Below, piece after piece: positions 23,841 through 27,700 of a DNA stretch of 32,000 bases (position 1 is its first letter; each line of letters opens with the position of its first letter). The stretch lies in NCBI GenBank assembly GCA_000002975.1, contig AF083031.2:60001-92000 (forward strand), in the 5' to 3' direction. Made by a program: the position numbers and the translations under genes. Under the pieces are notes generated by a model that had not been told where the DNA came from, ran no database searches, and saw only the letters and a list, made by a program, of their open reading frames with translations. The DNA comes from Guillardia theta nucleomorph. Taxonomy: Eukaryota; Protista; Cryptophyta.

Positions 23841-24734
23841 ATGAAATTGAATTGTTCTCAAAGTAAATCCCTTGTCTTCAAGAAATTCAATTTTTTATTT
23901 TCTAAATTTTCCAGGTTGATAGTTGTTAAAATAGAAAATCTTAATTCTGAACAAATAAAAAAATGCAAAAGATTATTAAACAATACTTCAATATTGATTA
24001 CTGGTAAAAATACTTTAATTAAAAAAGTACTCAGAGATAGATTGAAGAACTCAACACTGAGCAACGAAATTTTAACGAAAATTAATGGAAATGTAAGTTT
24101 TATTTTCACAAATGAGGATCCTTTTTTTATCCAAGAAATTTTGAAGAACAACTCTCTACCTACTGCTGCCAAGATTGGTCAAGTTGCACAATCAGATGTT
24201 TACTTAAGCCAGGGATTAACAAATATTTCTCCAGATGGCATTGGTATATTTCAATCATTAAATATACCTACCAAAATTCTTAAAGGACAAATAGAAATTA
24301 TAACAAATTTTAAAGTTTTAGAAAAAGGTAAAAAAATAAATGAAGCAGAAGCTACATTATTACAAAAACTTAATATATTACCCTTTTATAATGAGATTAA
24401 AATCATATCATTTTATGAAAATGGAAAATCATATGATCCCTCAGTGCTTAACTTTAATGAAAGTATGTTCGATAAAAGCTTTAAAGACTGTTTATCTTCA
24501 ATTGAATCATTATTAGAAAAAATATGCTTTCTTCATGAAGATGTGATTAAAAGGTTCATATTAAATACTAAAAGAAATATCAAATTAATATATAATTATA
24601 CAAAATTTCCTTTATTTGATAATCAAATTATGGAGAACAATCGTTTTCAAAATAATATCGTGCTCGATAAAATTACAGAAAAAAATGAAGAAAAATCTTC
24701 GAGCTCGGAATTAGTTTTAGATCTATTTAATTAA
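23841..24734 (+). CDS. rla0: 60S acidic ribosomal protein P0 (uL10)
   Basis: GKNTLIKK, GNVSFIFT, AAKIGQVA, FQSLNIPTKILKGQIEI, EATLLQKLNILPF. Confidence 0.96.
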   Translation: MKLNCSQSKSLVFKKFNFLFSKFSRLIVVKIENLNSEQIKKCKRLLNNTSILITGKNTLIKKVLRDRLKNSTLSNEILTKINGNVSFIFTNEDPFFIQEILKNNSLPTAAKIGQVAQSDVYLSQGLTNISPDGIGIFQSLNIPTKILKGQIEIITNFKVLEKGKKINEAEATLLQKLNILPFYNEIKIISFYENGKSYDPSVLNFNESMFDKSFKDCLSSIESLLEKICFLHEDVIKRFILNTKRNIKLIYNYTKFPLFDNQIMENNRFQNNIVLDKITEKNEEKSSSSELVLDLFN

Positions 24735-24811
24735 ATAATAAATAAATTTTAATATTTATTGAACCGTGGCTTTTTTTGAATAATCATATATTCATATATT
24801 TTAGTTTAAAT

Positions 24812-25480
24812 ATGGTTGTGGTTGAGTACATAGGTACTTTTATTCCAAACAAATTGATTATGTCGGACTCGAGTTATACCCATCTTGGACCTTCTAAGAA
24901 TAAAAAAAAACATTTATCGGTTATTCCAAATCCCAATACAAAATTTAATGATTACGATTTAGGTAAGATGATTTTCCTACTTTTAATACTGTTGAACTCA
25001 ATCAGTATTTTGAGAGTGATGGAGAATCAATTGTATTTTAAAATGTTTTTTTCTAATGAAATGCATTGTCCTGCTTTTGGGAGTTTAAAAAGATGTAGGA
25101 TCATTATAATCTATGCAAAAGTTTCTATCATTTGTTGTGTAATCAATGCAATCTATAGCTACTTAATCATGATCAACTATCATTTTTTCCATAGATTTGC
25201 TCTAAAGTGTTTTGCATATTACGAAAGTCCTTTCTGGTTCTTTGTCGGACTCGAATGGTTCAAATTGTACCATGAAGTATGGAGGTGGACAGATGATACT
25301 GGAGCTTCAGGTGAATTCACAGCTGATGTAATAGAGCGAATAGATGCTAATTTCGGATTATACCTTACAATGAGTGCATTTTCAGCTGCTGAATACCAAA
25401 AGATAGTGTTTTTGGCGCCTTTATTTGTAATTTCGAGGGAAGTCTACGCTTTGGTTTCTAATTTTTTAGATACCGAATAA
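24812..25480 (+). CDS. Four-TM membrane protein with CPxxGSxxRC loop; MARVEL/synaptogyrin-like; paralog of 27233-27700
   Basis: The track start at 24776 is a TTG; ATGs lie at 24812 and 24860. Four hydrophobic segments and HCPAFGSLKRC. Less AT-biased than its neighbours. Confidence 0.75.
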   Translation: MVVVEYIGTFIPNKLIMSDSSYTHLGPSKNKKKHLSVIPNPNTKFNDYDLGKMIFLLLILLNSISILRVMENQLYFKMFFSNEMHCPAFGSLKRCRIIIIYAKVSIICCVINAIYSYLIMINYHFFHRFALKCFAYYESPFWFFVGLEWFKLYHEVWRWTDDTGASGEFTADVIERIDANFGLYLTMSAFSAAEYQKIVFLAPLFVISREVYALVSNFLDTE

Positions 25481-25753
25481 GAAAAATCTACGGTTAGATC
25501 AACAAAGTTTTCAATATAAAAAATCGAATTGTCTATAGATTAAATTGACAAGTTTATAATTGAAGAATATAAGAAGAAACTTTAGGTAAGGAATAACTAT
25601 TTTTCTAAAATTATTAAATGTTTAAATTGAATTCTAGGCTATATATTTTAATCTTTTTAAGTAAAATTATAATCTTGATTATTTAATTTTAATGATTGTA
25701 GATCTATCATATTCTAAAATTCACATGTTGTCTTTGAAAAAAAATGATAGAAA

Positions 25754-27193
25754 TCAAACCATAAATGATTGTGTTTTAATTTTATTGGAATTTTCAAAAA
25801 TATTACTTAAAATTACAATATAAAAATGAACATAAATGAACTCATATATTCCGATATATTTTCTTAATGTTTTATTATAAAAAAAAACACTTTTCAAAAA
25901 CTTATTTTCTTTTTTTGAATATATTATTTTTTTACAATCTAAAAATTCATAGGATAACTGATAAACCTTATTAATATATGTTTTATTTGATGAATTTAAG
26001 ATTTTTGAATAAATAATATTTTTAGTTTTAAATAATGAAGATAATATAATGTTTTTTTGTCCATTCATAATTTCGTTACAAAATTTAATAGATATCTTAA
26101 AATAGTAAGTAGAATAAAATATTCTGGCAAAAAAAAAACTGAAAGTCTCATTAAAATAATTAATAGATTTTTGGTGTGGAATACTCATGATAATATATTC
26201 CATATGCTTATTAATTCTTATGAAATGAATTACTATCAAAAAAAATTTCAAATATTCCATTTTAAAAATTTTTATTAACCATGATTTATCAATTTTTATT
26301 TCTTTTATTTCTAATATTTTTATAATTGTAAAATTATTAGTTTTTATATTATCTAAAAATGTGTTTTTTATTTTTTTAGCATTGATAAAACTAAATTTTC
26401 GATTGATACATAATTTTATATGTTTTTTAAAACTAAAGTCATTTCTTAAAATATTTAATTTTATCATATTTTTACTTTTTTTAAATTCATAATTTTTTTC
26501 TTCAGTTTTAGTATGAATAGAAATTCTAAGCTTATAATTACAAGTTTGAAATATATTGAATTGAAGCAATTCTTCATAAATTAATAGTTGTTGGTTATAA
26601 TTAATCATAAATGACCAAATTATGGAAAAAAAATTTTCATATTTACTTCCTTTAGTTAAAAAACATCTGTAACTTAATTCAAAATAATTCCATATAGCAT
26701 TTTTTTCTTTTAAATTACAAAAAAATTGTCTTATTTTTATATCATATCTAATTAATTCAGTTAACCATATTAAAGATGTTATAACCGACAAAACAGTTCT
26801 GGAATTTAATTTTGAAGAAAATGAAAATATTGACATCTCAAATGGATAACCTAAAGTTTTTAATATTTTATAATAATCGAATGCGAGATTTGTACTCAAA
26901 TTACAATTATAATCTAGTATCATAATCATTTTTATAATTATAATTTTTAAACCTATATTTTTTTCATATCTAAACATTTTTTTATCGATTTTAATATTGT
27001 AACAAAATCTCTTAAGAAAATTATCAATTTTTTTTAAAGACTTGGATATAAAATTTTCTTCATTAGTCTTTTTTGAATCGTATTTTTTAAAGCCTGATAA
27101 TATAAGTTTAGATTTAAGTCTAAAATTATCTTCATTTAAATGATATTTATGATTAGGTAAAATTGAAATTCGACCTTGTTTGATTTTATTCAT
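25754..27193 (-). CDS. ndc80: Kinetochore protein Ndc80/Hec1-like (calponin-homology head)
   Basis: FISKSLKKIDNFL ~ FIQQCIRQLCEFL, ILKTLGYPFEMS...SLIWLTELI ~ IFKDLGYPFALS...ALVWLIDCI, WNYFELSYRCFL ~ LDYTIKCYESFM (human, recalled). Confidence 0.78.
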   Translation of the reverse strand: MNKIKQGRISILPNHKYHLNEDNFRLKSKLILSGFKKYDSKKTNEENFISKSLKKIDNFLKRFCYNIKIDKKMFRYEKNIGLKIIIIKMIMILDYNCNLSTNLAFDYYKILKTLGYPFEMSIFSFSSKLNSRTVLSVITSLIWLTELIRYDIKIRQFFCNLKEKNAIWNYFELSYRCFLTKGSKYENFFSIIWSFMINYNQQLLIYEELLQFNIFQTCNYKLRISIHTKTEEKNYEFKKSKNMIKLNILRNDFSFKKHIKLCINRKFSFINAKKIKNTFLDNIKTNNFTIIKILEIKEIKIDKSWLIKIFKMEYLKFFLIVIHFIRINKHMEYIIMSIPHQKSINYFNETFSFFFARIFYSTYYFKISIKFCNEIMNGQKNIILSSLFKTKNIIYSKILNSSNKTYINKVYQLSYEFLDCKKIIYSKKENKFLKSVFFYNKTLRKYIGIYEFIYVHFYIVILSNIFENSNKIKTQSFMV

Positions 27194-27232
27194 TTTTTAG
27201 AGTACAAAAATTATGTAATGCATATTTATAAA

Positions 27233-27700
27233 ATGGTTATAACCAAGATAACTGTGACTAGATGGATTGTAGCGATTGGAATAATGATGAACTCTATAAG
27301 GCTTTACAATTATATTAATTTTCATTTTATATTCCCCGTTCTATACAAAATTATGTGTCCAATACTTGGTTCAACGTTAAGATGCGATTCGGTGAACTCA
27401 TTAAACAAATCTGCTTTTATATCAGGACTATTGTTCTTAATACTTGATATGTTCACTTCACTTAGCGGTGAAAATTATTCAAAAATCTTTTTAAAGTTAT
27501 TACCTAAAGTATGTAGTGCTCAGTTGATTTTACATCTAATTGCAGTCTATTACATTAGTATTTGGTCAAAAGAAATTGGTTCTTTTGGACATAATAGATT
27601 AACTAGTTATCTTTTTCAAAGTGCAGTTAATATGTGTTTTTTTGCAGTATCCTGGATATTGTCTATTCTAGACTCAAATTTGTATATTTCCAATGAATAA
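27233..27700 (+). CDS. Four-TM membrane protein with CPxxGSxxRC loop; MARVEL/synaptogyrin-like
   Basis: The track start at 27176 is a TTG overlapping ndc80; ATGs lie at 27218 and 27233. MCPILGSTLRC is followed by AFISGLLFLILDMF. Confidence 0.75.
   Translation: MVITKITVTRWIVAIGIMMNSIRLYNYINFHFIFPVLYKIMCPILGSTLRCDSVNSLNKSAFISGLLFLILDMFTSLSGENYSKIFLKLLPKVCSAQLILHLIAVYYISIWSKEIGSFGHNRLTSYLFQSAVNMCFFAVSWILSILDSNLYISNE

Follow-up and report, generated by a model that had tools for sequence, protein, structure and literature searches.

Gene A and gene B, two genes of the Guillardia theta nucleomorph, appear to encode expressed, selected paralogues that belong to a small, undescribed eukaryotic family of tetraspan (four-helix) membrane proteins and may serve as scaffolds of periplastidal membranes; we put the probability of this reading as a whole at roughly 0.6. 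Both lie in the stretch of DNA analysed here, referred to as the window (32,000 nt, C3:60001-92000, where C3 is nucleomorph chromosome 3), and coordinates without a chromosome prefix are positions in it. The nucleomorph assembly comprises 551,264 bp in three contigs, with 196,216 bp for chromosome 1 (C1). Gene A (24812..25480, + strand) encodes a four-helix membrane protein of 222 aa, P0001, and gene B (27218..27700, + strand) a paralogue of 160 aa; neither has introns. An initial annotation of this DNA had described the two as duplicated, synaptogyrin-like MARVEL genes lying on the same strand on either side of ndc80, and both open reading frames (ORFs) and their arrangement were confirmed. 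The ATG of gene A coincides with the start of a 55%-identical orthologue, P0002, from an MMETSP transcriptome. For gene B the initial annotation had begun at an upstream TTG (27176), but since the 89%-identical P0004, from a Logan assembly, starts in the same way (MHIYKM), the gene is best read from 27218. The model of gene A is supported by its ORF, P0002, an AlphaFold2 (AF2) structure and RNA reads, and that of gene B by its ORF, P0003/P0004, an AF2 structure, its selection ratio and RNA depth.

The relationship between the two proteins is distant. Pairwise alignment statistics are weak (BLASTP aligns 37 residues, with an E-value of 0.003), and a first, two-by-two profile comparison gave a probability of only 45%, values that would suit a chance resemblance between AT-biased hydrophobic ORFs, or a case in which one of the two ORFs is no gene. 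A richer, four-sequence profile, in contrast, matched gene B in hhalign with a probability of 92-94% (E 2e-7 to 5e-7) over 119 columns, covering helix 1, the cysteine (Cys) loop, helices 2 and 3, and a W/G turn described below. The controls were clean: the real comparison scored 47.9, against a maximum of 22.6 in 200 column shuffles of B (100 full and 100 block-wise) and 11.9 for reversed B, and the nucleomorph cornichon, a 160-aa multi-helix protein of the same composition, reached a probability of 0.2% as negative control. Together with a second motif shared in register, conserved orthologues, RNA coverage and a low ratio of nonsynonymous to synonymous substitution rates (dN/dS), these results have already refuted the chance explanation, to which we leave next to no probability. 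The paralogy proposed in the initial annotation is thus supported by profile-profile comparison and shuffle controls, and the similarity extends well beyond the 10-mer on which it had been based. At the level of the aligned profiles, A and B are shown to be homologous and true paralogues; their identity in the family alignment is 17%, and by this measure the split between them is old.

As the initial annotation had described, both carry NSI in helix 1 and a loop-1 motif, which reads CPAFGSLKRC in gene A (25067..25096, + strand; family alignment and pattern scan) and CPILGSTLRC in gene B (27356..27385, + strand; pattern scan). The residues C, P, G, S, R and C of this loop are invariant in 6/6 family members, as is the C-x8-C spacing. 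A second motif, W-x-x-[ED]-x-G-x-x-G, lies in the turn between helices 3 and 4 and had been overlooked: it is WTDDTGASG in gene A (25286..25312, + strand), with the W and the last G invariant, and WSKEIGSFG in gene B (27563..27589, + strand; pattern scan and profile alignment). Both patterns were scanned in six-frame translations of 228 kb, which comprise all of chromosome 1 and the window. CP..GS..RC was found only in gene A, in a copy of gene A on chromosome 1 and in gene B, and W..[ED].G..G is confined to the same three genes, in the same order, 73 (A) and 69 (B) residues downstream of the loop-1 motif. In order, the signature of the family consists of helix 1, a short beta-hairpin, C-P-x-x-G-S-x-x-R-C, helix 2, a short basic loop, helix 3, W-x-x-[ED]-x-G-x-x-G and helix 4.

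Relatives of gene A and gene B were sought with word-index and HMMER protein searches, which detected four in all. P0005 (232 aa) was found at E 1.6e-6 by a full HMMER search with a profile of A and P0002, while P0006 came from a profile word search and P0007 (263 aa, from a Tara run) is its full-length cluster mate. The family set used here has six members, P0001-P0005 and P0007 (alignment A6). The transcripts behind P0005 and P0007 have an ordinary GC content (46-50%); the two proteins carry VCPAFGSxxRCE and a W..EV..G turn, and have no targeting presequence. A hidden Markov model (HMM) of the family matches the 551-kb genome at three loci and no more, namely gene A twice and gene B. A relative is also present in another cryptophyte nucleomorph; none of the relatives carries a Hemiselmis, Cryptomonas or Chroomonas nucleomorph label, in word-index searches and one full HMMER search with a two-sequence profile. 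Scans of metagenomes and of viral contigs gave no family relatives, and Pfam returned nothing relevant for any of the six members at E<=10. That the family is undescribed, as first suggested, thus holds in that it has no Pfam model, and no mention of genes A and B was found in the main text of the 2019 re-annotation (PMC6559170).

Both genes are transcribed. In raw RNA-seq reads from a 2026 run, the depth is ~11x in the body of gene A and up to ~300x at its ends, 7-38x in gene B and 0.5-2.7x in ndc80; because the library is strongly end-biased, these depths are evidence of transcription and not of relative levels. Gene B is under purifying selection, with a dN/dS of 0.23 against a close relative, where the N-terminus of ndc80 gives 0.27 and orf341 gives 0.38. 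The milder AT bias noted in the initial annotation is also evident, with a GC content of 32.7% in A and 28.4% in B, compared with 17.3% in ndc80 and 18.2% in orf341. Conserved orthologues, RNA coverage, GC content raised over that of the neighbours and the low dN/dS of B all identify A and B as real genes. At the start of gene A, 28 RNA reads end in non-templated poly(A) at 24853, 14 codons into the gene. Polyadenylation within the following gene is usual in nucleomorphs, and these ends are probably those of rla0 mRNAs polyadenylated inside the next gene.

Four helices are predicted for both proteins from the sequences and from the AF2 models, in line with the initial annotation. For gene A, the mean predicted local distance difference test score (pLDDT) is 67, with 27-35 in the first four ten-residue blocks and 70-86 in most of the helical region, and the helices span residues 47-74, 92-124, 128-163 and 168-221. 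For gene B, the pLDDT is 80 and the predicted template modelling score 0.69, and the helices span residues 10-33, 53-81, 85-119 and 122-159. Loop 1 has ~18-20 residues in the two models and is built as a single hairpin, with its two strands immediately before the first cysteine. Seven K/R residues lie in the N-terminus of gene A, whose loop 3 has a net negative charge, and K, R and E abound in the C-terminal tails of P0005 and P0007; by the positive-inside rule, this distribution of K/R would place both ends in the cytosol, which here is periplastidal, and the Cys loop and the W/G turn together on the opposite side. We thus infer from the distribution of charges that both termini face the periplastidal cytosol, with loops 1 and 3 on the far, lumenal side. 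A transit peptide at the N-terminus of A was considered and rejected: the residues preceding helix 1 align with PGxYAEIDK, which is conserved in the non-nucleomorph relatives, the N-terminus of the orthologue is acidic, and B has only ~9 residues before helix 1. Given this, A and B are probably inserted from the periplastidal cytosol into a membrane that faces it. The two proteins may form a hetero-oligomer; complex prediction for A (residues 45-222) with B gave a score of 0.00, which is evidence neither for nor against it.

The identity of the fold was addressed by structure and profile searches. In Foldseek, synaptogyrin (8a6m) is the top PDB match for both models, with E 0.017, TM-scores (template modelling scores) of 0.51/0.67 and 11% identity for A, and E 0.006, TM-scores of 0.52/0.52 and 15% identity for B. 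In both ESM Atlas structure searches, synaptogyrin clusters came first, followed by CASP-like proteins, which we take to be MARVEL-related, and then by claudin/MP20 and VKOR; language-model features placed a MARVEL cluster at rank 5 for gene B. The predicted topology, with four helices, cytosolic ends and a Cys pair in loop 1, would also be the same. These observations would fit a descent of A and B from the red-algal endosymbiont as strongly diverged proteins of the MARVEL superfamily (synaptogyrin/synaptophysin/CASP-like) that shape or organise vesicle-like periplastidal membranes. However, the Foldseek E-values fall short of significance, the four structure searches are not independent, as their inputs are homologous, and the Pfam MARVEL HMM (PF01284) has no match at E<=10 in 6/6 members, two of them of normal composition, or in the six-frame genome. 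Searches of PDB sequences with profiles A5, A6 and A2 at E<=10 likewise returned no MARVEL chain, but only a chance match to MrpG (E 0.09-0.15). Among the best structural matches of B are a maquette (14.9), LRRC8 (14.6), sarcospan (14.1), PRPH2 (13.5) and an MS4A protein (13.4), and synaptogyrin and synaptophysin score 12.6 and 12.5. The resemblance to a synaptogyrin C-x8-C loop and AFLTCLLYLALDVY, offered in the initial annotation, is a putative one, and a literature search found no paper on nucleomorphs together with MARVEL, on that synaptogyrin peptide or on the loop cysteines of synaptogyrins. To our knowledge, neither CPxxGSxxRC nor W..[ED].G..G is a feature of MARVEL proteins. Membership in MARVEL, which the initial annotation had put forward, is consequently not established, the structural matches being weak and a sequence-profile match being absent, and we treat it as a tentative possibility. 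As far as the models go, the fold class of A and B is that of a tetraspan four-helix bundle, for which MARVEL is the best single analogue.

The two invariant cysteines also have to be considered in their own right. Since they sit in a structured loop, and in VKOR, too, the loop between helices 1 and 2 contains a pair of cysteines, A and B could be thiol-redox or metal-binding membrane proteins of the VKOR/DsbB kind, whose loop cysteines would be chemically active on the far side. But there is no conserved CxxC and no further invariant cysteine (P0005 has only the two loop cysteines), neither VKOR nor DsbB is matched in Pfam, and there is no thioredoxin-like partner domain, so that we regard a redox or metal function as very unlikely. 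In the tetraspan-scaffold reading that we favour, the loop-1 Cys pair and the W/G turn would instead make up a small cap, stapled by a disulfide, on the non-cytosolic face, and A and B would be non-enzymatic scaffolds or organisers of a periplastidal endomembrane, which could be the nucleomorph envelope, the periplastidal membrane or vesicle-like structures. This role is proposed, with low certainty, by likeness to proteins of the MARVEL, tetraspanin and claudin types. A and B may also act with cornichon in vesicle-like traffic; periplastidal traffic of this kind is discussed in PMC6559170, and a part in it for A and B is our inference.

Several points weigh against this reading. The AF2 models were built from input alignments of only 4-6 sequences, with a mean pLDDT of 67 for A, and the localisation and topology of both proteins are predictions. 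Structural matches to these models fail to separate MARVEL from other four-helix bundles, and because no Pfam family matches, the functional analogy is one of fold class. The invariant Cys pair could equally serve metal binding or redox chemistry. No orthologue was found in other sequenced cryptophyte nucleomorph proteomes by HMMER with a two-sequence profile, and to call the family one of ancestral endomembrane proteins is a guess.

Gene A is present twice in the genome. It lies in a dispersed repeat of 1,058 bp (24729..25786) that is 99.6% identical to C1:160849-161906, as seen by self-comparison, contigs and a single-nucleotide polymorphism (SNP) in the RNA. The repeat contains gene A, a 273-bp 'ORF-less' spacer and the last 11 codons of ndc80, and its left end lies just inside rla0, a few bases ahead of the stop codon (24732-24734). 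On chromosome 1 the copy follows eIF6 (Pfam 169.6 bits), and a 262-aa ORF on the other strand takes its first ~31 codons from the right end of the repeat. The repeat is linked to the flanking sequence of chromosome 1 by contigs from three independent studies, and further contigs end at the flanks on chromosome 3; it is therefore not an assembly artefact. The one internal difference, a SNP at 25633, is represented by T and A in 145:147 RNA reads, and both copies of gene A are therefore transcribed. In another cryptophyte a single transcript carries rla0 followed by the orthologue of A, a gene order that points to the position beside rla0 on chromosome 3 as the ancestral one. Gene A has thus been copied between chromosomes 3 and 1 very recently, or has been held identical by gene conversion. 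RNA depth in the stretch 25481-25850 after gene A, listed as 'ORF-less', reaches 309x, more than anywhere else in the region, and the stretch contains loose ends of the 5' type (at 25483, 25620, 25626 and 25666) as well as the two alleles of the SNP at 25633; it may be the 3' untranslated region of gene A, the 5' end of the transcript of the chromosome-1 262-aa ORF, or both.

A genome-wide Pfam search showed that the cornichon gene (160 aa, Pfam 87.5 bits) is likewise repeated, with three copies in repeats of 671-817 bp that are 99.9-100% identical. One of them is on chromosome 1 (L009 1390-2063, corresponding to C1:~139359-140032) and two are on chromosome 3 (L010 1228-2043 and L011 1305-2121). 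The repeat comparison took in chromosome 1 and the 32-kb window, and within these compared parts the dispersed near-identical repeats carry genes for small membrane proteins; beyond its terminal inverted repeat, chromosome 1 has no other internal repeat of at least 150 bp, and none other is shared with the window. The terminal inverted repeat of chromosome 1 measures 11,957 bp and is 100% identical (C1:1-11957 and C1:184260-196216). The initial annotation had considered duplicated membrane-protein genes unexpected in a shrinking genome. As regards A and B themselves the duplication is old, but very recent dispersed copies do exist, of gene A (two) and of cornichon (three).

It is conceivable, if improbable in our view, that a red-algal synaptogyrin-like vesicle protein of the MARVEL superfamily survives in A and B as its last recognisable remnants, and that the two mark, with cornichon, a working vesicle or endomembrane shuttle of the periplastidal compartment. 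If this were true, the repeats with two copies of A and three of cornichon would reflect dosage selection or concerted evolution of that machinery.

Lengths and names invite confusion with two published genes. Gene B shares only its length and its chromosome with the cornichon ORFs, listed as Gt3_160a-c, so that the names could be confused; it is not one of them, as the cornichon model PF03311 has its three matches (87.8 bits) elsewhere in the genome and none in A or B. Gene A, in turn, is not the published orf222 (Gt1_222, a CpcT/CpeT bilin lyase; PMC2408579), since PF06206 (DUF1001/CpeT) matches only C1:136344-136883. The gene at that locus equals gene A and its chromosome-1 copy in length but is distinct from them, and A has no Pfam match.

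The local gene order is mrs2, rla0 (ribosomal P0), gene A, ndc80, gene B, orf341 and orf416. The ndc80 gene (25754..27193, - strand; Pfam Ndc80_HEC, 26 bits), whose 479-aa Ndc80 product is Gt3_479 in PMC6559170, is convergent with gene A and divergent from gene B. The start codons of ndc80 and gene B are only 24 bp apart (27194-27217), and the divergent layout is kept in a close relative (L002).

Cryptophyte nucleomorphs retain only a few hundred genes, and each conserved, expressed gene of unknown role is therefore presumably needed for the periplastidal compartment. What is new here is the second copy of gene A on chromosome 1. A tetraspan family with two diverged paralogues and a fresh copy provides two more concrete membrane proteins to localise, and its signature, CPxxGSxxRC with W..[ED].G..G, can guide a search for relatives among red algae and other complex algae. 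From the nearly identical copies of gene A and cornichon it is further evident that ectopic duplication or gene conversion is still active in a genome known for its reduction. In PMC6559170, cornichon, Sey1-like and coatomer-like ORFs prompt the question whether the periplastidal compartment has vesicle or endomembrane traffic of its own.

Among known systems, synaptogyrin and synaptophysin (MARVEL, PF01284; 8a6m and 9bra chain s) resemble A and B in having four helices of similar length and packing, cytosolic ends (as proposed here for A and B) and a Cys pair in the first lumenal loop. They differ in that no profile match connects them to A and B, in that the identity in structural alignments is 11-15%, and in a structural score no better than that of unrelated four-helix bundles. 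Proteins of the claudin/PMP22/TARP/MP20 group (PF00822, PF13903) are also four-helix bundles with beta structure in loop 1, an MP20 cluster reaching TM-scores of 0.56/0.69 alongside many structural matches to TARPs and claudins, and proteins of the claudin type have two loop-1 cysteines 8-10 residues apart. However, loop 1 of claudins has ~50 residues and a five-strand sheet, whereas that of A and B has a two-strand hairpin, and with neither a W-GLW-C-C signature nor a Pfam match at E<=10 in A or B the similarity is at the level of the fold. Cornichon/Erv14 (PF03311) is set apart by the strong Pfam match of the nucleomorph protein, where A and B have none, and homology to it was rejected, given the hhalign probability noted above for alignment A6. 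In PMC6559170, cornichon is linked to possible periplastidal vesicles, with Gt3_160a-c as the nucleomorph cornichon. Like A and B, it is a small, multi-helix nucleomorph membrane protein whose gene has a raised GC content, and it is present in dispersed identical copies.

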